A stretch of 64,000 bases of DNA from IMG/VR virus record IMGVR_UViG_3300032242_003291, positions 124,001 to 188,000 of that record; one strand, given 5' to 3'. The position numbers were made by a program, and so were the translations under genes. The notes under the pieces were generated by a model that saw nothing but the letters and a program-made list of their open reading frames with translations, did not search any database and was not told the DNA's origin. This document shows, piece after piece, positions 6,619 to 15,728 of the stretch (the first letter of the stretch is position 1; the number at the start of each line of letters is the position of its first letter).

Positions 6619-7242
6619 TTAGATTACTTCAAACAATTCAGTCTGAGATTTTCTTACTTTTTTATAATGTTGAGTTTCGTCAAGCCAATCTCTTTTTCCA
6701 ATCGGACAAACAACAACACTTTCTGTATCAGTCAATCCTAAGATTTCATTATACTTTGTTTTATCAAAACCTTCCATAGGACAAGCATCAATTCCAACAG
6801 TTGACAATGATGTTAATAAGTTACCTAAAGCTAAATAAATTTGTTTTTCAACCCAAGTACCTTTAGTTGCCTCATCCATAGAGTTGACTGCGTATTTCAT
6901 CATACCTTCATACTCAGCTAACATTTCTTTTGGAACTCCTCTTGTTTCAACAATGTTTTGAACAAACGCATCAACATCTCCATCATTAACATTTTTATTT
7001 TTTACAAAAACTAATAATGCGCTTGAATCAGTAATTTGTGTTTGTCCATAAGATGCCTCTTTAAGAGCATTTCTTTTTTCATTATCCATTACAATTAAAA
7101 CTTTATATGGTTGTAAACCAAATGAAGCAGGTGATAATTGGATAATCTCCTTCACTGTAGTTAATTCTTCGTCAGTTAATTGGTATGTAGCGTTAAATTT
7201 TTTGGTCGCATATCTCCAATTTAATTTTTCAATAATATTCAT
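6619..7242 (-). CDS. NAD(P)H nitroreductase (NfsB/NfnB-like)
   Basis: LNWRYATKKF, LSPASFGLQP, IDACPMEGFD motifs. Confidence 0.9.
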   Translation of the reverse strand: MNIIEKLNWRYATKKFNATYQLTDEELTTVKEIIQLSPASFGLQPYKVLIVMDNEKRNALKEASYGQTQITDSSALLVFVKNKNVNDGDVDAFVQNIVETRGVPKEMLAEYEGMMKYAVNSMDEATKGTWVEKQIYLALGNLLTSLSTVGIDACPMEGFDKTKYNEILGLTDTESVVVCPIGKRDWLDETQHYKKVRKSQTELFEVI

Positions 7243-7320
7243 AATTTACTTTTTTATAATGATAATAAAAAACCCCCAAACCGTCAAGTAAGGGGGTTAA
7301 TTTCTTTACAGAGAGTTATA

Positions 7321-7500
7321 TTATTTAACTTCTACTGCTTTTGGAGCTTCAGCTTTTGCTGAGTCTACAGTAACAACTGTAGAATCTTTCTTAGTTGAAT
7401 CTGCAACTACAGCAGTTGAATCAGATTTTACTTCAGTTGATGTTCCGTTTCCGCAAGAGGCTAATGCTACGATTGCGAATAATGCTACGATTTTCTTCAT
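7321..7500 (-). CDS. Small lipoprotein with repeated D-S-T/A motifs (59 aa, below ORF-track cutoff)
   Basis: Hand translation MKKIVALFAIVALASCGNGTSTEVKSDSTAVVADSTKKDSTVVTVDSAKAEAPKAVEVK; lipobox LAS-C. Confidence 0.85.
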   Translation of the reverse strand: MKKIVALFAIVALASCGNGTSTEVKSDSTAVVADSTKKDSTVVTVDSAKAEAPKAVEVK

Positions 7501-7607
7501 GTTTTTTTTCTTTTTTTTGTTAATGTATTAAACGTAATAGATTATAAATATATAAATTTATATCTAATAAGTCAATTTTTATGATATTTTTTTGAAAAAT
7601 TTTTTTG

Positions 7608-7695
7608 CGGAGAGTGCTGGATTTGAACCAGCGGTACCCTTTAGGAGTACGACAGTTTAGCAAACTGTTGGTTTAAGCCACTCACCCAACTCTCC
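7608..7695 (-). tRNA. tRNA-Ser(GCU)
   Basis: Cloverleaf GGAGAGTTGGGTGAGTGG…, anticodon loop TT-GCT-AA, long variable arm, G73. Confidence 0.95.
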
Positions 7696-7765
7696 TTAAA
7701 CTTGTCTCATACAAATAAAAATTCCCCTGAGGATTCAGAGGAATTTTCAACTATTCAATTAATTC

Positions 7766-8230
7766 TTATTTCAAGAATCTTAATTTATATAAGGTTGAAA
7801 AGATTAACTCTTGAACTCCGTCGATTTGATTTTGAATATAAGATTCTTTGACAGCCTTTCTGTTTTTTTCTATATTATCATCCAAATCTTTGAAATAACT
7901 TATTAACTGTTCAGTTGATTTATAATCAACCATTTTAACCGTTTTATATCCTGTAATCAAGTCATGTTTTCCTTGATAACTTTCAACAATACCATCGATT
8001 AACTCAACAATTTCATCATAGTAAGTTCCTAAAGCCATGTGTTCTGCAAACGATGATTGAGATTTTGTTTGCCAATGAAAAATATGGGCCTGACTTCTTG
8101 AATGAAGTAATGTAGCAATCATATCAACAACATCCGCTGTTTCAGTTGTTTCTTCTTCTTTTTTTTCAGCCTCGTTCAAGTGCATCACTTTGAACAACTG
8201 CTCCTTTGTTAATGTTAATTTTTTTTCCAT
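7766..8230 (-). CDS. Ferritin/Dps-like four-helix-bundle protein (phage DUF5856-like)
   Basis: LHSRSQAHIFHWQT, EHMALGTYYDEI…DGIVESYQG, TLYKLRFL; start corrected to 8230. Confidence 0.7.
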   Translation of the reverse strand: MEKKLTLTKEQLFKVMHLNEAEKKEEETTETADVVDMIATLLHSRSQAHIFHWQTKSQSSFAEHMALGTYYDEIVELIDGIVESYQGKHDLITGYKTVKMVDYKSTEQLISYFKDLDDNIEKNRKAVKESYIQNQIDGVQELIFSTLYKLRFLK

Positions 8231-8249
8231 ACATATAAATATATGGACT

Positions 8250-8324
8250 TGGGTGAATAACGGAAATCGTACCCGTGACAACTAAAACCACAATCTAGTG
8301 CTCTACCAACTGAGATATATTCCA
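8250..8324 (-). pseudogene. Degenerate tRNA-His(GUG)
   Basis: Cloverleaf with GTG anticodon, but mismatched pairs 1-72 and 2-71, no G-1, D-stem mismatch, T-loop TACGATT. Confidence 0.7.
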
Positions 8325-8330
8325 ATTTTG

Positions 8331-8402
8331 TGTGACTAGGGAGAATCGAACTCCCACAGAAAGTGCCACAAACTTTCGCCCTACCATTAGGCTATAGCCA
8401 CC
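8331..8402 (-). tRNA. tRNA-His(GUG)
   Basis: G-1 then GTGGCTA/TAGTCAC acceptor, anticodon loop TT-GTG-GC, T-loop TTCGATT; discriminator reads A. Confidence 0.9.
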
Positions 8403-8408
8403 GTGTTG

Positions 8409-8481
8409 AGGTCTTATTAGGATTTGAACCCAAATCTCTTCGTCCGTAGCGAAGCGTACTCATCCATTATACTATAAGACC
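8409..8481 (-). tRNA. tRNA-Arg(ACG)
   Basis: CTTCG-CTACGGA-CGAAG anticodon arm, full cloverleaf. Confidence 0.95.
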
Positions 8482-8485
8482 ATTG

Positions 8486-8556
8486 TTATCCGACCTGGAT
8501 TCGAACCAGAAATGACAGAACCAAAAACTGTAGTGTTACCGTTACACTATCGGACA
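8486..8556 (-). tRNA. tRNA-Gln(UUG)
   Basis: TGTCCGA/TCGGATA acceptor, loop TT-TTG-GT, T-loop TTCGAAT. Confidence 0.93.
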
Positions 8557-8561
8557 ATGTG

Positions 8562-8635
8562 TGGACCCTCACGGGCTCGAACCGTGGACCTAATGATTAT
8601 GAGTCATTTGCTCTAACCTGCTGAGCTAAGGGTCC
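8562..8635 (-). tRNA. tRNA with CAU anticodon, probably Ile2 (lysidine, reads AUA)
   Basis: CT-CAT-AA loop; C4-G69 and C5-G68 pairs typical of TilS substrates; no initiator GGG/CCC stem. Confidence 0.85.
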
Positions 8636-8643
8636 TAAATGGG

Positions 8644-8725
8644 TGGGAGCAACAGGACTCGAACCTGTGAACTCGAAAGAGGGAAGATTTACAGTCTTCT
8701 GCCATTGCCACTAGGCGATGCTCCC
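8644..8725 (-). tRNA. tRNA-Tyr(GUA)
   Basis: CT-GTA-AA loop, long variable arm. Confidence 0.95.
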
Positions 8726-8730
8726 AAAAA

Positions 8731-8858
8731 CAGGAAAGGAGAAGATGGTTCAGTGGACATCTCCTTTTATGATTGGCATTACTTATGGTAGTTTAAACTC
8801 CGACGATGTCTTATTCCAACCACTACCAGGTTTTTACATCATCATTCCCCAATCAACC
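8731..8858 (-). ncRNA. Candidate structured ncRNA between tRNA-Trp and tRNA-Tyr
   Basis: Stems TGATTGG/CCAATCA and TGGTAGT/ACTACCA, crossing GATGATGT/ACATCGTC, 3' hairpin AAAGGAGA/TCTCCTTT. Confidence 0.6.
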
Positions 8859-8863
8859 TTTAG

Positions 8864-8936
8864 CACGCATGTCAGGACTCGAACCTGAAACTCCTAGTTT
8901 TGGAGACTAGTACTCTACCAATTGAGCTACACACGC
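8864..8936 (-). tRNA. tRNA-Trp(CCA)
   Basis: CTAGT-CTCCAAA-ACTAG anticodon arm. Confidence 0.95.
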
Positions 8937-8944
8937 ATTCTTTG

Positions 8945-9016
8945 AGGTCAGTACAGGATTTGAACCTGTGTAAATAGTTTTGCAGACTATCGCCTAAGCC
9001 ACTCGGCCAACTGACC
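8945..9016 (-). tRNA. tRNA-Cys(GCA)
   Basis: ATAGT-CTGCAAA-ACTAT anticodon arm, U73. Confidence 0.95.
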
Positions 9017-9202
9017 ATTTAATGTTTTTTTCTCCTTATATTTTTTACACCTTTTTTTAGGTATTTCAACATAATAGGAACCAAAGACAGAAGTAAAAAC
9101 TCCAACGTAATTCATACCTTTCTCTCTGACATCCTGTAATACCGTACCCTCATAAAGGTGGGGAAAAATATCTATACTGTCTTTTTTTACTACTACTTTC
9201 AT
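8987..9202 (-). CDS. Hypothetical protein (3' end runs into tRNA-Cys)
   Basis: 71-aa ORF with A-rich start context. Confidence 0.5.
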   Translation of the reverse strand: MKVVVKKDSIDIFPHLYEGTVLQDVREKGMNYVGVFTSVFGSYYVEIPKKRCKKYKEKKTLNGQLAEWLRR

Positions 9203-9212
9203 TTTTTTATTT

Positions 9213-9419
9213 TTAATGTGTTCCGTCTACTAATGAAATACCATGTCTCAAACCTGTAATGAAATCTTCAATGTCTTGTTTTTTCTTGAAGTGTTGACCT
9301 ACAACAACTCCAACTTCATTTCCAAAATCACTTATATCACCATAATAACCAATATCTTCTGAACGAGCTACTAATAATTTTCCCGTTTCTTCAACTAAAT
9401 TTTGTATTATTTTTTCCAT
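9213..9419 (-). CDS. Hypothetical protein
   Basis: ORF; start corrected to MEKII. Confidence 0.55.
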   Translation of the reverse strand: MEKIIQNLVEETGKLLVARSEDIGYYGDISDFGNEVGVVVGQHFKKKQDIEDFITGLRHGISLVDGTH

Positions 9420-9426
9420 ATTTTTT

Positions 9427-9660
9427 TCATTTAACCATATCAAAGTTAAGATTATTATCTGACATTAACTCACGAAGTTCATCCCTTATTTCTTGATAAG
9501 CATCATACTTATCCTGTGGTAAATCATCGGACGCATATTTGGTCTTAGCCCTCAAAGATTGGTCCAATTCCCATAATACACTCCAAAATTTAAGACCCTT
9601 TGTTGCCAATTCAAACTCCTGATTATCGTCAGGTAAATTAAATTCAAGTATCGCTCTCAT
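9427..9660 (-). CDS. Hypothetical phage protein (M-x-AILEFNLPDD family)
   Basis: ORF; start corrected to MRAILEF because the longer frame overlaps tRNA-Phe. Confidence 0.7.
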   Translation of the reverse strand: MRAILEFNLPDDNQEFELATKGLKFWSVLWELDQSLRAKTKYASDDLPQDKYDAYQEIRDELRELMSDNNLNFDMVK

Positions 9661-9675
9661 AACACATTTATTTTG

Positions 9676-9748
9676 TGGTGACGGGCGGAATTGAACCGCC
9701 GACACATAGATTTTCAGTCTATTGCTCTACCAACTGAGCTACGTCACC
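9676..9748 (-). tRNA. tRNA-Phe(GAA)
   Basis: ATAGA-CTGAAAA-TCTAT anticodon arm. Confidence 0.95.
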
Positions 9749-9749
9749 A

Positions 9750-9965
9750 TTAATACACTTCAATATCTTTCAAAGGTACATCTTCTCCCTGAGTGTGCCT
9801 ATAAACTGTGTTGAAAAATTCTCCTAACAATCTATAGTCCTCAGGAATCATATGACAAAAATCAAATGCAGGAATTGCATCATGAATTTTACCTTGAACT
9901 ACTTTATCCCTTTTATCATCTGGTTTGTATTCAAACACAACATGACCTCTAAAAACATATTTCAT
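9750..9965 (-). CDS. Hypothetical protein
   Basis: 71-aa ORF between tRNA-Glu and tRNA-Phe. Confidence 0.6.
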   Translation of the reverse strand: MKYVFRGHVVFEYKPDDKRDKVVQGKIHDAIPAFDFCHMIPEDYRLLGEFFNTVYRHTQGEDVPLKDIEVY

Positions 9966-9978
9966 AATCTTTATTTTG

Positions 9979-10050
9979 TACCCCCGACGGGAATCGAACC
10001 CGTCTTTTCAGGATGAAAACCTGATGACCTAACCGATAGTCGACAGGGGC
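9979..10050 (-). tRNA. tRNA-Glu(UUC)
   Basis: TCAGG-TTTTCAT-CCTGA anticodon arm. Confidence 0.95.
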
Positions 10051-10059
10051 ATTGTTTCA

Positions 10060-10067
10060 CAAAGATA
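10060..10067 (-). promoter_or_regulatory. Bacteroidota-type -7 promoter box before tRNA-Glu
   Basis: TATCTTTG on minus strand with TTTG about 19 nt upstream. Confidence 0.7.
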
Positions 10068-10087
10068 CAACCAATATTTCAAATAAC

Positions 10088-10124
10088 AAAAAAACCCCGA
10101 ACTTCATTTCTGTCGTTCAGGGCT
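10088..10124 (-). terminator. Intrinsic terminator of attenuator candidate 1
   Basis: AAGCCCTGAAC…GTTCGGGGTTT stem followed by T-tract. Confidence 0.8.
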
Positions 10125-10152
10125 TCTATATATAACTCTCTTCAGGAATTAA

Positions 10153-10251
10153 CTAATCTTGAGGGTCACCGTCTGAACTACGTAGCATACTCTCATACCA
10201 ACAAGTTTCTTGCTGTGTACTAAATTCTATATGTTGCATTGTAGTTTTCAT
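10153..10251 (-). CDS. Putative leader peptide 1 (32 aa) ahead of the Glu-to-Ser tRNA run
   Basis: MKTTMQHIEFSTQQETCWYESMLRSSDGDPQD; promoter upstream, terminator downstream; codons match downstream tRNAs. Confidence 0.7.
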   Translation of the reverse strand: MKTTMQHIEFSTQQETCWYESMLRSSDGDPQD

Positions 10252-10267
10252 GTTATTATAATTATAT

Positions 10268-10275
10268 CAAAGATA
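10268..10275 (-). promoter_or_regulatory. Bacteroidota-type promoter driving leader 1
   Basis: TTTGACAA…TATCTTTG on minus strand, 16 nt before the leader ATG. Confidence 0.7.
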
Positions 10276-10335
10276 GGGAATATCTTCGAATTGTCAAATA
10301 TTTTTTTATTACAGTATTAAGAATATTTATATTTA

Positions 10336-10764
10336 ATGAAGGATTTACGTGAAATAATTAAAGAAACCTTATTGTTAGAAATTGCTGAGGTAATTGGTAA
10401 AATTCGTTCGAATTATGATGGAGAACCTTATGTGTTTAATATAAAAACAACTCATCATTCTAATCAAAGAGGGAGGGGAAGAAATGACATTGAATTTTAT
10501 GATGAAAGAGAAGTAACAAAAGAAGAATTAATGGAATTTTTGAAATTGCACATTAAAGATATTTTGAACTCAATAAAAAACGATAATATTATTTCAAATA
10601 TACCATTTGTTATGAAAAGTAAAAAATGGTCATTGTCTCTTGCAATCGGACCAAATAATAAAAGAGGTAATGTTTGGGACTTTGTAATTATGACCGTTTT
10701 CAGAGAAGGATATAATCAAAAATTAAAAACAGGAAAATACCAATTTATTTTGGATGTTCAATAG
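10336..10764 (+). CDS. Hypothetical protein
   Basis: 142-aa ORF preceded by TATTTATA. Confidence 0.65.
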   Translation: MKDLREIIKETLLLEIAEVIGKIRSNYDGEPYVFNIKTTHHSNQRGRGRNDIEFYDEREVTKEELMEFLKLHIKDILNSIKNDNIISNIPFVMKSKKWSLSLAIGPNNKRGNVWDFVIMTVFREGYNQKLKTGKYQFILDVQ

Positions 10765-10771
10765 TTAGATG

Positions 10772-10852
10772 TGCCCCAAGAGAGATTCGAACTCTCATGA
10801 CTTACGTCACTGGTTCCTAAGACCAGCGTGTCTACCGTTCCACCATCAGGGC
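10772..10852 (-). tRNA. tRNA-Leu(UAG)
   Basis: CTGGT-CTTAGGA-ACCAG anticodon arm, long variable arm. Confidence 0.95.
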
Positions 10853-10856
10853 ATGT

Positions 10857-10947
10857 ATCACATCAGACAGGCATTCTACTTCCCGCAAGCACGAAATTGT
10901 ATCTTATTTAACCCTACGTTAGCGGTACGGGTACCTGAAGATATGAT
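10857..10947 (-). ncRNA. Candidate rod-like structured RNA between HNH gene and tRNA-Leu
   Basis: Nested stems ATCATATC/GATGTGAT, CAGGTA/TGCCTG, CCCGTA/TGCGGG. Confidence 0.5.
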
Positions 10948-10948
10948 T

Positions 10949-11398
10949 TTATTTTTTTATTTTTTTTCTCCCCCTCCATGTAGGAGTTAATGAATGACAA
11001 TTAGGACAAAGAACTTTTAAGTTAGTAATATCATTATTTTTATTATTACCGTCCATATGGTCAACTTCCATACTAATTGGTTTACCCATCCATTCTGTTA
11101 TACCGCATTCTTCACATTTGTTTCCTCTTTCTTCTTTAACCCATTTTTTGATACTCCATATATGTGCAGTTTCATAATTTCGTTTTTTTCTAAATGTTTC
11201 CCTTGATTTAGTTATTTTTTCTGGATTAGAGTTATGACTATAATCACAATTTAACCACCATTCAGATTTAAGAACACCTTCACTAATTTTTTTCTTTATA
11301 TCTTCCGTTCTTATTCTTGAATTAGCACAAGATTTAGAACAAAATTTACCACTACCAAAAGAACCATCATGTTCTTTTTCGCATTTTAAGCATTTCAT
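10949..11398 (-). CDS. Free-standing HNH endonuclease with N-terminal Cys-rich zinc finger
   Basis: CLKC…FCSKSC N-terminus; CEECG…EVDHMDGNNKNNDITNLKVLCPNCH HNH motif. Confidence 0.9.
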   Translation of the reverse strand: MKCLKCEKEHDGSFGSGKFCSKSCANSRIRTEDIKKKISEGVLKSEWWLNCDYSHNSNPEKITKSRETFRKKRNYETAHIWSIKKWVKEERGNKCEECGITEWMGKPISMEVDHMDGNNKNNDITNLKVLCPNCHSLTPTWRGRKKIKK

Positions 11399-11402
11399 AA
11401 TT

Positions 11403-11439
11403 GAACTATAATTTATTTATTATAAATAGTCAATAGTTC
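11403..11439 (-). promoter_or_regulatory. Hairpin enclosing TATTTATA and covering the HNH translation-initiation region
   Basis: GAACTAT…TATTTATA…ATAGTTC, 3' arm ends 4 nt before ATG. Confidence 0.55.
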
Positions 11440-11455
11440 GATTATAAGTTATTAG

Positions 11456-11527
11456 TAGTCCCACCAAGACTCGAACTTGGAACATTTCATTAGAAGTGAA
11501 AAGTTATATCCCTTTAACTATAGGACC
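11456..11527 (-). tRNA. tRNA-Arg(UCU)
   Basis: TTTCA-CTTCTAA-TGAAA anticodon arm. Confidence 0.95.
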
Positions 11528-11555
11528 AATATATTACAAAGATAAGGAAAAAAAA

Positions 11556-12296
11556 CTATTCGGCAAAACTTTCTTCGTATATTGTATCTGTATCGTTTTC
11601 TTCTGTATTGTAAGTGTGAACTAACTCAATTTCCATATTATTAAAATTAAATATAAATTCACCATCAGAACCTTCATTTATTTCCCACCCACCATAGTAA
11701 TTTTCAAGTTGTCTATAACACCAATCTTCTATGTCTGTTGGTACTCCATCGCTTGTTTCATCAAAACTACTTTCAATATATCCTGAGTCACCAGAACCAT
11801 TATATTTTACTGTCAATATTCCTCCATTAGGTACTTGAATATCTTCAAAAACACCATCTTTCTCCCACTCTTCGAATATTTCCTGACCATCCTCATCCAC
11901 CCAATGATGAGCACTTGAATCACTTTTTGCATAAAATGTCCACCAATGTTTCACAGATATTTCCTGTGTTTTACTGTCTATATCAAATTCAATTCTTTCA
12001 TAATTCAAATCTTGTTCGTTAGGTTCTTTGAATAAATTTTTGTCTTCAATATAATCTCCAATTTTTTTAAGGATTTGTGTTAATCCATTAGGAATTTCAG
12101 CACTGTAGTTGTTTGAAAAATGAGTTTCTTGTTGCCAATTTATATCGGAAAAATTGAAATCAGACCATCCGTCAATATCCAATTCAATACTGCCATCTCT
12201 CATTCCAAGTGATGACAAGTATCTACAGACTCTTCTGAGGTATTGTTTATCCTCAGGGGTTAATATATTAAACGAATTTACATTTCTTTTTTTCAT
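11556..12296 (-). CDS. Acidic protein with C-terminal DUF6878-like domain
   Basis: VKYNGSGDSGYIE…GGWEINEGSDGEF pattern. Confidence 0.6.
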   Translation of the reverse strand: MKKRNVNSFNILTPEDKQYLRRVCRYLSSLGMRDGSIELDIDGWSDFNFSDINWQQETHFSNNYSAEIPNGLTQILKKIGDYIEDKNLFKEPNEQDLNYERIEFDIDSKTQEISVKHWWTFYAKSDSSAHHWVDEDGQEIFEEWEKDGVFEDIQVPNGGILTVKYNGSGDSGYIESSFDETSDGVPTDIEDWCYRQLENYYGGWEINEGSDGEFIFNFNNMEIELVHTYNTEENDTDTIYEESFAE

Positions 12297-12307
12297 ATAA
12301 ATAAATA

Positions 12308-12934
12308 TTACTCAAAATCTTCTTTCCATGAATCCTTATGATAGTTGAATAACTTAAAATCCTTTTCCAATTTTTCATAAACATAATCAGCAATTTCTTG
12401 GTCATAGTATGTTTTCCAACTAGGTCTATCAGATTTGAATTTATTAACTTTAATAAACTTGTTGAAGGATTCAGTTAATATATCCATATTGTCTCTAATT
12501 ATTGATAATGATTTCAAATCAGATTCTAAATGTTCGTATCTAATATAATATTTTGGTGCCATCGGCATTGCTTTTAGTGCATCGTGACATCTTGTATGCC
12601 AATAATTTTTGTTTGGTTTACCCTGAAATGAATCGCTTGTTGGATTATTAATTGGGTCTGAAAAAACAAATTCCAACCATTCTCTGTAATTCAAATCTTT
12701 TGTATGATGAACTTCAAAAAAATGCCAGTGTGAATGTAATGACGTAAGTCTTGAATATGGATTTCTTATGTTTACATATAAATCATAGTCATCTTTTCCT
12801 TTTTCACGTGGCATTGCAATCTCATGTAAATGAGATTCTGAAAAATTTAACAACTTCATCAATTCAAATGTGGCCCTTGATGCAGTTCTTTCAGGTATTA
12901 ACCATATTACTTTGTATTTGTCTGAATAATTCAT
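12308..12934 (-). CDS. Sulfotransferase-family-like protein
   Basis: IPERTASRA, VNIRNPYSRLTS, IRYEHLESDL, YEKLEKDFKLFNY motifs. Confidence 0.65.
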   Translation of the reverse strand: MNYSDKYKVIWLIPERTASRATFELMKLLNFSESHLHEIAMPREKGKDDYDLYVNIRNPYSRLTSLHSHWHFFEVHHTKDLNYREWLEFVFSDPINNPTSDSFQGKPNKNYWHTRCHDALKAMPMAPKYYIRYEHLESDLKSLSIIRDNMDILTESFNKFIKVNKFKSDRPSWKTYYDQEIADYVYEKLEKDFKLFNYHKDSWKEDFE

Positions 12935-13281
12935 TAATCTTCAATTTTTAGTGTTCTTATCATCCATTGAGGTCTTTGGTTTGTTGCAACATTGTTGACC
13001 CATTCTTTTGCAGATGGTATATAATTATTACAATCTTCCTTAACGTGTTGTTCACCAACATATCTAGTATATACTACCTTACCATCAGAATTTTTGAATT
13101 CTGAACCAAATCTTTTTTCCATCTCAAAAATTCCTTCACTATGATGTCTAAACATTCTGTGTAAAGAATCACCAAACCAACCTTTGGTTTCATCCAACCA
13201 TTCGTGTAAATGAATATAGTCTTCAGGTTTTCCACCAAATTTTTTGGCAGATGATTTTGCGTGTACGTTAGGATGTGCCAT
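12934..13281 (-). CDS. DUF6915-like protein
   Basis: MAHPNVHAKSSAKKFGG…HRMFRHHSEG…GEQHVKED pattern. Confidence 0.7.
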   Translation of the reverse strand: MAHPNVHAKSSAKKFGGKPEDYIHLHEWLDETKGWFGDSLHRMFRHHSEGIFEMEKRFGSEFKNSDGKVVYTRYVGEQHVKEDCNNYIPSAKEWVNNVATNQRPQWMIRTLKIED

Positions 13282-13864
13282 TCTTCCAAGAATCTTTATT
13301 GTAGTTTAATAATATAAAATCTTCCTTCAAATAATCATAAACAAATTGGGCTAATTCATCAGTATAAAATGATTGCCAACTTCTTGGGTCAATACTTTTA
13401 TATGAATTATGACGTATGTGGTTATTAAAAATATATTCTAATTCATCATTAAAATTTTCTTTAATGAACCATAAGTTATTTAAGTCTTCCTCTAACGATT
13501 CAAATCTAACAAAATAATTGGGCATTTTATTCTTAAACGCCTTAACTAAAGAAATATACATTTGTGTTGGTAGAACGTATAAATCATCCATTTCAATGGG
13601 TATTTTTTTTCTAACCCATATTTCAAAGGGGACCTTTTTATCAATTATTTTTGTTTCAATCGAAAAGTTATATATAGAAACTAAACGAGAATAGGGATTT
13701 CTAACATTAGCTGTTAGATAGTAATCCATATACTCAGTGTTATCTATGAACTTATGTTGATTGGAATCGGAAAAATTAAAATATTCCACTATTGGTCTAC
13801 AAGAACGAGTTGCCGCTCTCATTGGTAAAAACCAAAATATTTTTAATTTTTTAGAATATGGCAT
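13268..13864 (-). CDS. Sulfotransferase-family-like protein, paralog of 12308..12934
   Basis: LPMRAATRS, NVRNPYSRLVS, VRFESLEEDL motifs. Confidence 0.65.
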   Translation of the reverse strand: MPYSKKLKIFWFLPMRAATRSCRPIVEYFNFSDSNQHKFIDNTEYMDYYLTANVRNPYSRLVSIYNFSIETKIIDKKVPFEIWVRKKIPIEMDDLYVLPTQMYISLVKAFKNKMPNYFVRFESLEEDLNNLWFIKENFNDELEYIFNNHIRHNSYKSIDPRSWQSFYTDELAQFVYDYLKEDFILLNYNKDSWKNGTS

Positions 13865-14097
13865 TATAAAATTTTCTCGTCTTGTTTTTTTCGAGTTTCA
13901 GACTCTTTTACCATTCTAACCCAAGTCAAAATCACATCGATAGGTGCCAACAACCATGACAAAATTACAACCATTAATACGTCCAAACCTGGAGATAAAC
14001 CAATCTGACCATCGTTGTATTCTTTTTTATACTTTACTCCAAGTTGATAAAAACAATAGAGTAAACTGATAATGTAATAACCAATAAAAATATTCAT
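13864..14097 (-). CDS. Small two-TM membrane protein
   Basis: True start MNIFIGYY at 14097; the longer track ORF runs through tRNA genes. Confidence 0.6.
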   Translation of the reverse strand: MNIFIGYYIISLLYCFYQLGVKYKKEYNDGQIGLSPGLDVLMVVILSWLLAPIDVILTWVRMVKESETRKKQDEKIL

Positions 14098-14111
14098 AAT
14101 AAAAATTTTAG

Positions 14112-14184
14112 AGCCTCCTATCGGAATCGAACCAATGACATTATCATTACAAATGATACGCTCTACCTGCTGAGCTAAGGAGGC
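14112..14184 (-). tRNA. tRNA-Thr(UGU)
   Basis: TATCA-TTTGTAA-TGATA anticodon arm. Confidence 0.95.
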
Positions 14185-14189
14185 AAATA

Positions 14190-14294
14190 TTGGAACTTTG
14201 CGGTATTCCAACTGATGGGTCAGTCCCCACACCTCGGTTCGTGAAATGTAAGTTTCCAACCGATGATACTCTTCTGTCTTACACATTAGTATCC
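14190..14294 (-). ncRNA. Candidate pseudoknotted RNA 3' of tRNA-Gly(GCC)
   Basis: GATACT/AGTATC crossed by GTGTAAG/CTTACAT; further stems TCGGTT/AACCGA and TTGGAA/TTCCAA. Confidence 0.6.
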
Positions 14295-14299
14295 AGATG

Positions 14300-14372
14300 A
14301 GCGGAAGACCAGGCTCGAACTGGCCACCCCAACCTTGGCAAGGTTGTGCTCTACCGAATGAGCTACTTCCGC
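14300..14372 (-). tRNA. tRNA-Gly(GCC)
   Basis: CAACC-TTGCCAA-GGTTG anticodon arm. Confidence 0.95.
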
Positions 14373-14378
14373 TTAAGA

Positions 14379-14425
14379 GTGTAGTGGCGGATATCACACC
14401 TGTGGTTACTACACGTTTTATCCAC
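14379..14425 (-). ncRNA. Candidate H-type pseudoknot 3' of tRNA-Gly(UCC)
   Basis: GTGGATA/TATCCGC crossed by GTGTAGT/ACTACAC. Confidence 0.6.
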
Positions 14426-14429
14426 TTTG

Positions 14430-14502
14430 AGCGGGAGACCAGGCTCGAACTGGCCACCTATAGCTTGGAAGGCTATCGCTCTACCGAATGAGCTACTCCC
14501 GC
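14430..14502 (-). tRNA. tRNA-Gly(UCC)
   Basis: TT-TCC-type loop (CTTCCAA) closed by ATAGC/GCTAT; nearly identical body to tRNA-Gly(GCC). Confidence 0.95.
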
Positions 14503-14504
14503 AT

Positions 14505-14612
14505 GTTCCCGTTTTTTCCTCACATTTAGCCCAATCAACAGTGAGACATTGATTGGATTTTGATTATAGAAGCTTACAAGGTTTCCCCATTAAGCCGTTA
14601 CCACGGGCAAAC
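14505..14612 (-). ncRNA. Candidate multi-stem RNA between tRNA-Asp and tRNA-Gly(UCC)
   Basis: Closing CCCGT/ACGGG, GGCTTA/TAAGCT arm with GAAA loop, CCAATCAA/TTGATTGG arm whose loop CTCAC can pair with GTGAG. Confidence 0.55.
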
Positions 14613-14620
14613 TAATTCAG

Positions 14621-14695
14621 CGGACTAGACGGGACTCGAACCCGCGACCCCAAGCGTGACAAGCTCGTATTCTAACCAAGCTGAACTACCAGTCC
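14621..14695 (-). tRNA. tRNA-Asp(GUC)
   Basis: TT-GTC-AC loop, full cloverleaf, G73. Confidence 0.95.
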
Positions 14696-14701
14696 TTTTT
14701 G

Positions 14702-14773
14702 CTCTTTCTGAGAATTACGATATCTCGACCCCATCATTAACAGTGATGTGCTCTGCCTCTGAGCTAAGAAAGA
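14702..14773 (-). tRNA. tRNA-Asn(GUU) with atypical T-loop
   Basis: CATCA-CTGTTAA-TGATG anticodon arm; T-arm GAGAT-ATCGTAA-TTCTC. Confidence 0.85.
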
Positions 14774-14778
14774 ATCTG

Positions 14779-14851
14779 TAGGGAAGACAGGGTTCGAACC
14801 TGCGACCCCTTGGTCCCAAACCAAGTACGCTACCTACTGCGCTACTTCCCT
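14779..14851 (-). tRNA. tRNA-Pro(UGG)
   Basis: CTTGG-TTTGGGA-CCAAG anticodon arm. Confidence 0.95.
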
Positions 14852-14861
14852 ATTGGTTCAA

Positions 14862-14869
14862 CAAAGATA
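14862..14869 (-). promoter_or_regulatory. Bacteroidota-type -7 promoter box before tRNA-Pro
   Basis: TATCTTTG; a TTG 20 nt upstream lies in the terminator loop. Confidence 0.65.
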
Positions 14870-14871
14870 AT

Positions 14872-14905
14872 AAAAAAACCCTGAACTTTCAAGATTCAGG
14901 GTTTT
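14872..14905 (-). terminator. Intrinsic terminator of attenuator candidate 2
   Basis: AAAACCCTGAAT…GTTCAGGGTTTT stem plus T-tract. Confidence 0.85.
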
Positions 14906-14926
14906 AATATTTGGCTTTATTTGTTA

Positions 14927-15022
14927 TTACCATCCACTAGCTTCTGAACTTAAGCATAAGATACCCGTGCCACCGTTAGTCGGCGTGAATCCCAAATCTG
15001 TATCTAAATTCAAATGTCTCAT
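14927..15022 (-). CDS. Putative leader peptide 2 (31 aa) ahead of the Pro-to-Thr tRNA run
   Basis: MRHLNLDTDLGFTPTNGGTGILCLSSEASGW; TATTTATA upstream, terminator downstream; codons match downstream tRNAs. Confidence 0.7.
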   Translation of the reverse strand: MRHLNLDTDLGFTPTNGGTGILCLSSEASGW

Positions 15023-15035
15023 AGTGTAATAATAT

Positions 15036-15043
15036 TATAAATA
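15036..15043 (-). promoter_or_regulatory. TATTTATA motif (putative late promoter) driving leader 2
   Basis: Motif 13 nt before the leader ATG. Confidence 0.55.
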
Positions 15044-15056
15044 TATCCAAAATCAA

Positions 15057-15728
15057 TTAGTTATTCCCTTTTATAAAAATGTTTCCAGGTTTACTCATAT
15101 CGAACCTCATTACAGGACTCACAAAAGTAGTGTAAAGACGATATCTCCCTTTTGGTAAATAATTACCTGTGTAGTCAAAGTAATAGTTATAAATGGTACT
15201 ATTCAAAGTAACTATGGATGTTTTTAAACCTGTTCCGCCAATTTTGATTAATGATTGTTTGTATGTGTCATTGTTCATCGCATTAACAGGGATAAAGATG
15301 GTAACCCACACACTATTATCATTAATCGTTAAATTATTAATAGTTAATGAATCTATATTATGTGATATAACATTAACAGATTTGACTGAGGGTAGTTGTC
15401 CATTATACCAATATTTCAAATTAATATAATTCAAAACATCATTTTTATTTGCATCTGTAATTCCTGTTCCTAAATTGAATCCTAAAAATGGAAATCTTGT
15501 TGAATGTGTTACTGAATCTTTAAGATATTTCACAATTAAGTCTTGTTTTGATTTTGGTTCAATAAAAATGTAAGCAAGATTATTTGATTCTGATGTTATT
15601 GTGGATTTTGTAACCACATCATTCACTTGAATTGTATTGGTTTGATGGGATACGAAAATATCCTGTTTTGAACAAGAAACCACTGACACGGTTATTACCG
15701 CTGCTAAGATGAATTGTTTTAGTTTCAT
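15057..15728 (-). CDS. Lipoprotein of unknown function
   Basis: Signal peptide with lipobox VVS-C. Confidence 0.7.
   Translation of the reverse strand: MKLKQFILAAVITVSVVSCSKQDIFVSHQTNTIQVNDVVTKSTITSESNNLAYIFIEPKSKQDLIVKYLKDSVTHSTRFPFLGFNLGTGITDANKNDVLNYINLKYWYNGQLPSVKSVNVISHNIDSLTINNLTINDNSVWVTIFIPVNAMNNDTYKQSLIKIGGTGLKTSIVTLNSTIYNYYFDYTGNYLPKGRYRLYTTFVSPVMRFDMSKPGNIFIKGNN

Follow-up and report, generated by a model that had tools for sequence, protein, structure and literature searches.

A giant phage of Bacteroidota-type hosts places, in front of each of two tRNA gene clusters, a short leader ORF spelled in the codons read by the tRNAs that follow it. We propose that slow decoding of this leader lets transcription run on into those tRNA genes by ribosome-mediated (trp-type) attenuation, although neither translation of the leaders nor termination and regulated read-through has been shown experimentally. 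The analyzed window is a stretch of 64,000 nucleotides from the IMG/VR virus record IMGVR_UViG_3300032242_003291. A sequence-only reading of the window had described the two leaders and proposed that stalling on a depleted or cleaved tRNA switches on the operon that supplies it. The observation is confirmed, it becomes much stronger with comparative data from more than 100 related uncultured jumbo-phage loci, and the proposed attenuation is supported. The suggested link to tRNA-cleaving host defences, however, remains speculation.

Architecture of the two leader units

All tRNAs in 7607-14851 are on the minus strand. The promoter of leader 1 (P1, 10268..10297, −) is TTG-N19-TAtcTTTG, of the Bacteroidota sigma-A type, with the −7 box ending 16 nt before the ATG. 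The same box lies 16-19 nt before the ATG in 18 of 38 type B relatives (the leader classes are defined below). The leader 1 ORF, MKTTMQHIEFSTQQETCWYESMLRSSDGDPQD (10251..10153, −), has 32 codons plus a stop and is conserved as an ORF in all 37 distinct type B homologs aligned. It is followed by a terminator at 10127..10090, consisting of AGAAGCCCTGAAC, a 12-nt loop and GTTCGGGGTTTTT, and then a T run. A second promoter, P2 (10060..10089, −), again TTG-N19-TAtcTTTG with its box at 10067..10060, begins in the T tract of the terminator and ends 9 nt before tRNA-Glu. A TAnnTTTG box is present in 31 of 38 type B relatives. Run 1 (7607..10050, −) contains tRNA-Glu, Phe, Cys, Trp, Tyr, CAU (Met or Ile2), Gln, Arg(ACG), His, a weak tRNA-like gene with anticodon GUG (8255-8322), and Ser(GCU), with small protein genes interspersed.

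The promoter region of leader 2 (15029..15056, −) carries the ATATATTTAT box (15046..15037) and an overlapping sigma-70-like TTGATT-16-TATTAT. The TATATTTAT box is conserved 7-17 nt before the ATG of type A, type C and some type B leaders, and it also sits upstream of several protein genes in the window. The leader 2 ORF, MRHLNLDTDLGFTPTNGGTGILCLSSEASGW (15022..14927, −), has 31 codons plus a stop and is conserved in 25 distinct type A homologs. Its terminator (14905..14875, −) has the 5′ arm AAAACCCUGAAU, the loop CUUGAAA and the 3′ arm GUUCAGGGUUUU, followed by a U tract to 14872. The −7 box of P2 of run 2, TAtcTTTG (14862..14869, −), lies 10 nt before tRNA-Pro, and its −33 TTG is located in the terminator loop. 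Interestingly, the loop sequence and the box co-occur among relatives. The proximal cluster of run 2 (14111..14851, −) comprises tRNA-Pro, Asn, Asp, Gly(UCC), Gly(GCC) and Thr(UGU). Arg(UCU) at 11455-11527 and Leu(UAG) at 10771-10852 lie further on, behind their own promoter box (11537-11566).

Both leaders share the motif AGTTCAGA at codons 25-27, which are AGT TCA GAC in leader 1 and AGT TCA GAA in leader 2. TATGCT precedes the motif in both, but 4 nt versus 2 nt away and in different frames. GTTCAG is complementary to CTGAAC in leader 1 and, with one G-U pair, to CTGAAT in leader 2. In leader 1, 15 of the 19 codons 6-24 are read by run 1, or 16 if the CAU tRNA reads ATA. In leader 2, 12 of the 16 codons 5-20 are read by run 2 under strict wobble, or 13, as the sequence-only reading had counted, if Thr(UGU) also reads ACT. 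Before codon 25, leader 1 indeed lacks Gly, Asp, Asn and Pro, and leader 2 lacks Gln, Glu, Trp and Tyr. Leader 1 has codons for all 10 tRNA species of its run within 23 codons, whereas none of the other 185 short ORFs and none of 2738 23-codon windows inside long ORFs does so. Leader 2 alone is only moderately unusual, with 13/23 matches and 7/8 species, roughly the top 0.5-2% of gene windows.

Covariation of leader codons with the downstream tRNAs

The leader ORFs are conserved in relatives only 68-85% identical at the DNA level, and indels in the first ~20 codons are multiples of three. We distinguish at least four leader classes, each mirroring its own run. Type A precedes Pro-Asn-Asp-Gly-Thr(-Ala), and type B precedes Glu/Val-Phe-Lys-Cys-Trp-Tyr-CAU-Gln-Arg-His-Ser-Ile. 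Type C, MRTTLLHTLLLDRQGLLRRLMP, precedes Leu-Arg-Leu, while a fourth, MRNLSLHSLSYLYLHS..., precedes His-Ser-Ser-Tyr-Leu-Leu-Leu, with 13 of 13 codons cognate. Interestingly, the relative L053 has run B split in two, and each half has its own matching leader. In 20 phages, own-run versus other-run cognate codons were 285/420 versus 35/420 for type A and 307/420 versus 51/420 for type B, that is, about 70% versus 10%, compared with a gene-wide use of either codon set of 30%.

The sequence-only reading had proposed testing whether leader codons in relatives track the downstream tRNA inventory, and they do so at both the amino-acid and the synonymous-codon level. When runs were permuted among leaders, 0 of 5000 permutations reached the observed match for both types. 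One-sided Fisher tests per tRNA gave 3e-6 for CAU/ATA, 2e-6 for Ser(UGA)/TCR, 3e-5 for Arg(ACG)/CGN, 2e-4 for Phe and 8e-4 for Glu. Non-overlapping nearest-pair contrasts gave 37 changes in the predicted direction, 7 against and 64 ties. The statistical tests are not fully corrected for shared ancestry, and run boundaries and operon structure are assumed. In 21 further leader variants from an independent scan, 217/336 codons were cognate, versus 156 ± 11 when permuted (0 of 5000). Exceptions exist: Val codons are kept in six phages without a Val tRNA, and QQ is kept in the phage L062 without a Gln tRNA, possibly because CAACA/UGUUG forms a hairpin. Synonymous codon choice (AGT versus TCR, CGY versus AGA, ATA with the CAU tRNA) follows the isoacceptor, which selection on the peptide cannot explain.

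The cognate fraction is low at codons 2-4, 0.6-0.97 at most of codons 5-20, and back to background from codon 21-25 onward, an end point about one ribosome footprint before the motif. In leader 1, the sensing codons 5-20 (10192..10239, −) are M Q H I E F S T Q Q E T C W Y E, with further cognate codons extending to codon 24 (down to 10180). In leader 2 they are N L D T D L G F T P T N G G T G (14963..15010, −). Most codon species occur only once or twice per leader, and sensitivity to any one tRNA may be low.

Alternative RNA helices and the proposed switch

The shared motif lies in RNA segment 2, (GUA)GUUCAG/GUUCGG, which lies about 73-79 nt after the ATG. Across relatives the motif sits 66-84 nt from the ATG in all three frames, and the stop codon ranges from −6 to +32 nt from the motif. 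In leader 1, segment 2 is GUAGUUCAG (10173..10181, −; end of codon 24 to codon 27), and its GUUCAG pairs with CUGAAC of segment 3, the terminator 5′ arm AGAAGCCCUGAAC (10115..10127, −). Segment 4 comprises the 3′ arm GUUCGGGGUUUUU and the U tract (10088..10102, −). In leader 2, segment 2 is UAAGUUCAGA (14943..14952, −; codons 24-27), and the two terminator arms are segments 3 and 4.

The sequence-only reading had cautioned that the antiterminator core is only 6 bp. This concern is eased by conservation of the 2:3 helix, at 5-9 bp, across the three leader classes examined for it (A, B and C). The helix is predicted in the MFE of transcripts cut before the 3′ arm in most homologs. In the alignment, 81% of cells are paired, against 46% or less for slid controls; five pairs show compensatory changes, and 0 of 500 shuffles reach the observed covariation. 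Helix pairs include GTTCAG/CTGAAC, ATTCAG/CTGAAT, AGTTCGG/CCGAACT and GTAGTTCGG/TCGGACTAC. Nevertheless, the helix is short, with a 23-52 nt loop, and much weaker than the terminator, so it must act kinetically. A few type B leaders (the group of relatives L041, L063, L080 and L045, plus L056, L057 and L062) have only a weak 2:3 helix.

The 2:3 helix is complemented by a 1:2 helix that the sequence-only reading did not see, present in the three classes examined for it (A, B and C). In leader 1, segment 1 is AACUAC (10241..10246, −; codons 2-4), which pairs with GUAGUU of segment 2 as an anti-antiterminator in the MFE of the full leader. Across 37 homologs 83% of cells are paired, against 45% or less for slid controls, although covariation is weak; codons 2-4 are conserved but rarely cognate to the run. 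In leader 2, segment 1, UUUGAAUUUA (15005..15014, −; codons 3-6), pairs with UAAGUUCAGA in a 10-bp MFE helix, and 71% of cells are paired across homologs, against 43% or less for slid controls. The 1:2 helix is supported by conservation more than by covariation, since 28 of 500 and 6 of 500 shuffles reach the observed score.

We consider it likely that each unit is a four-segment attenuator in front of a phage tRNA operon. The direction of the switch and its physiological trigger are inferred, as is translation of the leaders. With no ribosome, 1:2 and 3:4 would form and transcription would stop. A ribosome that decodes the list quickly would run over segment 2, or sit at the stop codon next to it, while RNA polymerase makes segments 3 and 4, and the terminator would form. 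Conversely, a ribosome slowed or stalled anywhere in codons 5-20, because a cognate charged tRNA is scarce, would break 1:2 but leave segment 2 free, so that 2:3 forms, the terminator cannot, and polymerase reads into the tRNA genes. The result would be negative feedback, in which the supply of decoding-competent tRNA of exactly the species in the operon sets its transcription. As the sequence-only reading had noted, a host-type promoter box follows the terminator; a consensus promoter (P2) lies there in the window and in most relatives, where attenuation can therefore only modulate a basal level. In the L017 subgroup of type A relatives, however, tRNA-Pro starts 9 nt after the terminator stem with no promoter between, and these tRNAs can only be reached by read-through.

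Comparison with known systems and alternative explanations

The trp, his, leu, thr, phe and ilv leader-peptide attenuators of Proteobacteria (trpL, hisL, ilvL and others) likewise combine a short leader ORF with regulatory codons, four RNA segments, an intrinsic terminator before the regulated genes and a ribosome position that selects the fold, and the ilv leaders also sense several amino acids at once. Here, the regulated genes are tRNA genes instead of amino-acid biosynthesis genes, the leader lists up to about 13 different codon species, mostly once or twice each, instead of tandem runs of one, the list tracks the isoacceptor content of the operon, and the system is in a phage with Bacteroidota-type promoters. 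No Rfam leader family matches, the best hit being Thr_leader at 24 bits against a gathering score of 55. By leader-peptide attenuation, the pheM leader of the pheST (phenylalanyl-tRNA synthetase) operon of E. coli probably also controls a component of the decoding machinery in response to the supply of charged tRNA, but it controls a synthetase, senses a single tRNA species and is cellular. In T-box riboswitches, tRNA status also sets read-through of a terminator through a competing antiterminator; however, a T-box binds uncharged tRNA directly and needs no ribosome or ORF, and no T-box match was found. Work on the large tRNA arrays of T4, T5 and huge phages, seen as codon-usage compensation or as counter-defence to tRNA depletion, is the origin of the idea in the sequence-only reading that such tRNAs replace depleted host tRNAs. 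That work concerns what the tRNAs do, not how they are regulated, and our full-text literature searches found no leader-peptide control of phage or cellular tRNA genes.

It is possible, though unlikely, that the leaders are attenuators that evolved to read amino-acid starvation or tRNA charging in the host, switching the operon on under starvation or after host shut-off without a feedback loop. As established for trp and his, attenuation senses charged tRNA arriving at the A site, so it cannot tell low charging from low tRNA abundance. The anatomy fits either trigger. However, amino-acid sensing alone would not select for synonymous codon choice that follows the downstream isoacceptor, nor for leaders that change when single tRNA genes are gained or lost. 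Moreover, making more tRNA does not relieve amino-acid starvation.

It is somewhat more doubtful that the leader, its promoter and its terminator form an independent small protein or small RNA gene that ends constitutively, with the tRNAs transcribed only from P2 and the codon resemblance serving another purpose, for example a translated reporter of tRNA function whose output is not transcription of the run. P2 is a full consensus promoter directly before the first tRNA in the window and in most relatives, and the terminators are strong, the full leaders folding at about −42 kcal/mol with the hairpin formed. In contrast, the absence of P2 in the L017 group, the frame-independent motif at a fixed distance from the ATG, its covariation with the terminator 5′ arm, and the end of the cognate codons one footprint before it are not expected for a free-standing small gene.

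Finally, chance, or a by-product of phage codon usage or shared ancestry, might be invoked because leader 2 alone is only moderately unusual, the codon ranges were chosen after the sequence had been seen, and related phages are not independent samples, but this explanation is effectively refuted by the own-run excess, the match of at least four unrelated leader classes to their own runs, the permutation tests and the nearest-pair contrasts.

tRNA runs and their leaders

Eighteen tRNA genes lie on the minus strand of the window between 7607 and 14851. Rfam adds a weak tRNA-like gene at 8255-8322 (-) (36.6 bits), missed by ARAGORN, with the anticodon loop UUGUGGU (GUG, His-like) and a degenerate T arm. 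It lies directly after the regular tRNA-His and may be a decaying duplicate. Read on the minus strand, the genes form two runs. Run 2 consists of Pro, Asn, Asp, Gly(UCC), Gly(GCC) and Thr, followed by about 2.6 kb of protein genes and then Arg(UCU) and Leu(UAG). Run 1 consists of Glu, Phe, Cys, Trp, Tyr, CAU, Gln, Arg(ACG), His, the weak tRNA and Ser(GCU). As the sequence-only reading described, each run is preceded by a promoter-like region, a short ORF and an intrinsic terminator, with a TAtcTTTG box before the tRNAs. Leader 1 (10251..10153) reads MKTTMQHIEFSTQQETCWYESMLRSSDGDPQD and leader 2 (15022..14927) reads MRHLNLDTDLGFTPTNGGTGILCLSSEASGW, and both carry AGT TCA GAn at codons 25-27. 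The window is part of a 317-kb uncultured viral contig with no close cultured relative, as a near-identity search of the region against cultured phages gave only tRNA-sized hits.

The correspondence in leader 1 exceeds what is seen elsewhere in the window. In this leader, 17 of 23 codons (2-24) are read by run 1, and codons for all 10 tRNA species of that run are present. It is the only one of 186 short ORFs of the window with this property, and none of 2738 23-codon windows inside long ORFs shares it (maximum 9 species). Genes use the run-1 codon set at 30%. Leader 2, with 13 of 23 matches and 7 of 8 species, falls in roughly the top 0.5-2% of gene windows, which is suggestive but not decisive on its own.

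To extend the comparison, a neighboring DUF6915 gene (12934-13281 (-)) was used to collect 80 related loci (designated by L numbers) out of 597 confirmed matches, from contigs of up to 326 kb. The leader regions are only 68-85% identical at the DNA level, yet ORFs of 22-37 codons are present in every distinct homolog found, and indels in the first ~20 codons are in frame. The leaders fall into families. Type A (leader 2 of the window) precedes Pro-Asn-Asp-Gly-Thr(-Ala), and type B (leader 1 of the window) precedes Glu/Val-Phe-Lys-Cys-Trp-Tyr-CAU-Gln-Arg(ACG)-His-Ser-Ile. Type C, which is absent from the window, is MRTTLLHTLLLDRQGLLRRLMP and precedes Leu(UAA)-Arg(UCU)-Leu(UAG), with five TTA and four AGA codons.

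A pattern scan of bacterial genome records gave mostly chance hits, such as a terminator after a ribosomal protein S9 gene (L114), and only two contigs, L089 and L092, were relevant. L089 (JAVTWD010000016.1, 375 kb) carries a fourth class, in which MRNLSLHSLSYLYLHSVGSGDILM precedes His-Ser-Ser-Tyr-Leu-Leu-Leu and all 13 codons at positions 4-16 are cognate at the codon level. L089 and L092 (JBAXAJ010000017.1) are filed under bacterial MAGs (a Bacteroidota bacterium and a Candidatus Shapirobacteria bacterium, respectively) and are probably mis-binned phage DNA. A scan of viral contigs added 21 further variants with rearranged runs. One of them is MKNMNLHIAVIKPMAVCQWYPRAISGSDQVFS before Pro-Pro-Lys-Cys-Trp-Leu-Val-Tyr-Ala-Gln-Met-His-Arg-Ile, with 15 of 16 codons cognate.

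Correspondence between leader codons and the tRNA inventory

The sequence-only reading had proposed examining whether leader codons in related phages change with the downstream tRNA content, and we find that they do. In 20 phages with both leaders, codons 2-22 are read by the leader's own run in 285/420 (type A) and 307/420 (type B) cases, whereas the other run of the same phage reads 35/420 and 51/420. Permuting runs among leaders of the same type never reached the observed match (type B, 480 vs 406 +/- 9; type A, 388 vs 364 +/- 6; 0 of 5000 each). In these counts, the tRNA calls come from ARAGORN and may miss genes, runs were taken to extend to the next leader or to the end of the locus and some are truncated, CAU tRNAs were allowed to read ATG or ATA, and U34 was taken to read only A and G, which is conservative. 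Per-tRNA associations are strong where the tRNA varies, namely the CAU tRNA with ATA (3e-6), Ser(UGA) with TCA/TCG (2e-6), Arg(ACG) with CGN (3e-5), Phe (2e-4) and Glu (8e-4).

To limit the effect of shared ancestry, we took non-overlapping nearest pairs, ranked by the marker gene, that differ in tRNA content. The cognate codon count was higher in the phage that has the tRNA 37 times, lower 7 times and equal 64 times (one-sided binomial about 3e-6). Such controls reduce the effect of relatedness among phages but do not remove it. The independent set of 21 new variants gives 217/336 cognate codons against 156 +/- 11 when permuted, with 0 of 5000 permutations reaching the observed value.

Individual cases are telling. 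The window lacks Val, Lys and Ile(GAU) tRNAs and reads HIEFSTQQETCWYESM, whereas L003 has them and reads HIVFSKQQEICWYEIM. L057 lacks the Thr tRNA, and its type A leader has no Thr. L046 and L040 lack the CAU tRNA and have Phe where relatives have ATA. Interestingly, L053 has run B split in two, each half behind its own leader. The first uses only TCA/TCG for Ser (its run has Ser(UGA)), and the second uses AGT (its run has Ser(GCU)). Selection on the peptide cannot explain synonymous choices of this kind. Exceptions exist, however, as six phages keep a Val codon without a Val tRNA and QQ is kept in L062 without a Gln tRNA. In the latter case, the explanation may lie in the RNA. In type B leaders, CAACA (the QQ codons) and UGUUG (the CW codons) form a small invariant hairpin (alignment A2 columns 40-71; window about 10199-10215 (-)), which may explain why QQ..CW is kept even where the Gln tRNA is missing. 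This hairpin could be a polymerase pause hairpin, although it never varies and offers no covariation.

RNA segments, promoters and the inferred switch

The cognate codons are not spread evenly. Their fraction is low at codons 2-4 (0.20-0.48 in type A and 0.06-0.25 in type B), is 0.6-0.97 at most of codons 5-20 (lowest 0.52 in type A and 0.34 in type B), and returns to the 0.2-0.3 background from codon 21 (type A) or from about codon 23-25 (type B). The conserved motif [A/G]TTC[A/G]G starts 66-84 nt after the ATG, at about codon 25, in all families and in all three reading frames, and the stop codon lies anywhere from 6 nt before to 32 nt after it. The motif is therefore an RNA element, not a peptide element. 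The sensing codons end about one ribosome half-footprint (4-5 codons) before it, a spacing such that a ribosome stalled at these codons would leave the motif free, while one at or near the stop codon would mask it. Just 5' of the motif, the TATGCT box noted in the sequence-only reading forms a small hairpin with an upstream GGUAU in the predicted folds of both window leaders (10183-10199 and 14953-14965 (-)), and TATGC is conserved in types A, B and C.

The motif (segment 2) is complementary to the 5' arm of the terminator (segment 3). The helix is 5-9 bp in nearly all units, although it is weak or absent in a few type B leaders. Matched variants include GTTCAG/CTGAAC, ATTCAG/CTGAAT, AGTTCGG/CCGAACT, GAGTTCGG/CCGAACTT and GTAGTTCGG/TCGGACTAC. 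On the type B alignment, 80.7% of cells pair, against 46% or less when the partner is slid, five of eight pairs show changes on both sides, and no shuffle of 500 reaches the observed covariation. Type A gives 81% paired, with G-C to A-U changes in two lineages. RNAalifold on the whole leaders recovered only the terminator and, in type B, the CAACA/UGUUG hairpin, so the alternative helices had to be specified and counted explicitly. In transcripts cut before the 3' arm, the minimum-energy fold pairs the 5' arm with the motif in most homologs of all three types, and does so in the window's own leaders.

Full-length folds show a further feature missed by the sequence-only reading, namely that without a ribosome the motif is predicted to pair with the start of the ORF (segment 1). 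In leader 1, AACUAC (codons 2-4) pairs with GUAGUU, in leader 2, UUUGAAUUUA (codons 3-6) pairs with UAAGUUCAGA, and in type C, GAACAA pairs with UUGUUC. The helices of the leader 1 and leader 2 types are kept in 83% and 71% of cells, respectively, against 45% or less when slid. They vary little, and their support comes mainly from conservation, as 28 of 500 and 6 of 500 shuffles reach the observed covariation score. Such a pairing would explain why codons 2-4 are conserved yet not cognate. In type A, the first base of the motif, the matching base of segment 1 and the last base of the 5' arm change together in L003 and L063. With segment 4 as the 3' arm, this layout appears to be that of the classical four-segment attenuator, with 1:2 and 3:4 in one state and 2:3 in the other.

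The TAnnTTTG promoter boxes (TTG-N19-21-TAnnTTTG) appear to be of the Bacteroidota sigma-A type. Leader 1 and many type B leaders have a full TTG-N19-TAnnTTTG promoter 16-19 nt before the ATG. Conversely, a strict TAnnTTTG search upstream of type A leaders found almost nothing (1 of 26), and type A, type C and some type B leaders carry a TATATTTAT box instead. The same box sits upstream of several protein genes in the window. Seven exact copies of ATATATTTAT are present (267, 7544, 8235, 15037, 22590, 32681 and 55773, all on the minus strand), and those examined lie just upstream of start codons, including that of leader 2. This box is a candidate phage promoter element distinct from TAnnTTTG, although with one mismatch allowed the count (36) is not above chance.

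A second TAnnTTTG box lies between the terminator and the first tRNA in 31 of 38 type B, 15 of 26 type A and 5 of 5 type C units, usually 6-16 nt before the tRNA. In type A, its -33 TTG lies in the terminator loop (TTGAAA), and this loop sequence is found in the units that have the box and replaced in those that lack it. In the window (14887-14893 with 14862-14869 (-)), the -7 box directly follows the U tract, and a terminator and a promoter share the same 45 nt. In the L017 subgroup and a few other type A units, there is no such box and tRNA-Pro begins 8-15 nt after the terminator stem, where the tRNAs can be reached only by reading through the terminator. Attenuation would therefore add to a basal level in the window, as the sequence-only reading cautioned, but would be the sole access in some relatives.

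From these computational data, we infer the following mechanism as the most likely one. In the default state, 1:2 and 3:4 form and transcription terminates. Fast decoding of codons 5-20 takes the ribosome over segment 2, or to a stop codon next to it, while the polymerase makes the terminator, and transcription again terminates. In contrast, slow decoding or a stall at any cognate codon keeps 1:2 open and leaves segment 2 free, so that 2:3 forms and the polymerase reads into the tRNA genes. Because most codon species occur once or twice, the leader may act as a timer over the summed decoding time of the set as much as an OR gate for single stalls. The output is the very tRNAs being tested, so the loop is homeostatic, and its natural trigger may be the absence of phage tRNAs early in infection, loss of host tRNAs, tRNA-cleaving defences or starvation.

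Among other explanations, a pyrBI-type mechanism, in which the ribosome blocks the terminator directly, was rejected since the stop codon lies 25-35 nt before the terminator stem in the window. A peptide with a function of its own was rejected since the frame of the motif varies and synonymous codons track the tRNAs. A by-product of codon usage and chance were likewise rejected.

Comparison with known systems and neighboring features

As inferred, the mechanism works like the trp, his and ilv attenuators and like the pheM-pheST attenuator, and it resembles T-boxes only in purpose. Rfam at a permissive threshold found only the tRNAs, the extra weak tRNA and a sub-threshold Thr_leader hit at 14870-14968 (24.1 bits against 55, E = 0.43), and no T-box hit was obtained at E <= 1 in 7000-15500. 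How phages regulate their tRNA genes is essentially unknown, and we found no report of leader-peptide attenuation of tRNA genes in phages or cells, although most subscription journals were outside the full-text searches. What appears to be new is the regulated target and the sensor logic, while the mechanism itself is known.

It is likely, though not established, that these leaders represent a previously undescribed regulatory principle for tRNA genes. In this view, a modular 'codon barcode' leader peptide lets a virus measure, by translation, how well the exact set of tRNAs in an operon is being supplied, and adjust that operon's transcription by attenuation. The barcode is rewritten as tRNA genes are gained, lost or moved, and it would also switch the operon on when host tRNAs are degraded or cleaved during infection or by anticodon-nuclease defences. 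If the model holds, it gives a direct feedback loop from decoding capacity to tRNA gene transcription, shows that attenuation works in phages with Bacteroidota-type promoters, and provides a natural, evolvable multi-input sensor over up to about 13 codon species. The leader sequences could then be read as the phage's own statement of which codons each tRNA decodes (for example, ATA appears to be read by the CAU tRNA), which makes them useful for annotating isoacceptor function and operon boundaries in uncultured phages. The idea that phage tRNAs answer tRNA depletion would also become directly testable.

The DUF6915 protein encoded inside the tRNA region (12934-13281 (-)) has 44-54% identical homologs in tRNA-rich phages of Streptomyces, Bacillus, Gordonia and others (127 cultured-phage records). 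In Streptomyces phage Bmoc, it lies about 2.3 kb from a tRNA-Leu, and it may have a tRNA-associated function of unknown nature. Two paralogous sulfotransferase-like ORFs (12308-12934 and 13268-13864 (-)), with borderline Pfam Sulfotransfer_2 scores, flank this gene between the tRNA clusters, and a DUF6878 protein (11556-12296) and an HNH endonuclease (10949-11398) lie in the same region. The 96-136-nt spacers inside the tRNA runs (14503-14619, 14185-14298, 8727-8862 and 10853-10948 (-)) contain no ORF of note and no Rfam hit, and their folding showed no convincing structure (z-scores from -0.6 to -2.6). They could be degraded tRNAs or processing spacers. Finally, a conserved 26-codon ORF (MPASSLASLPHQEFCCPYLDYTLNNK and variants), at 8917-8997 in L012 and at the same place in L015, L020, L022, L037 and L055, lies about 450 nt upstream of a Met-Thr-Ser(UGA) tRNA run, but it does not resemble the tRNA set of that run.
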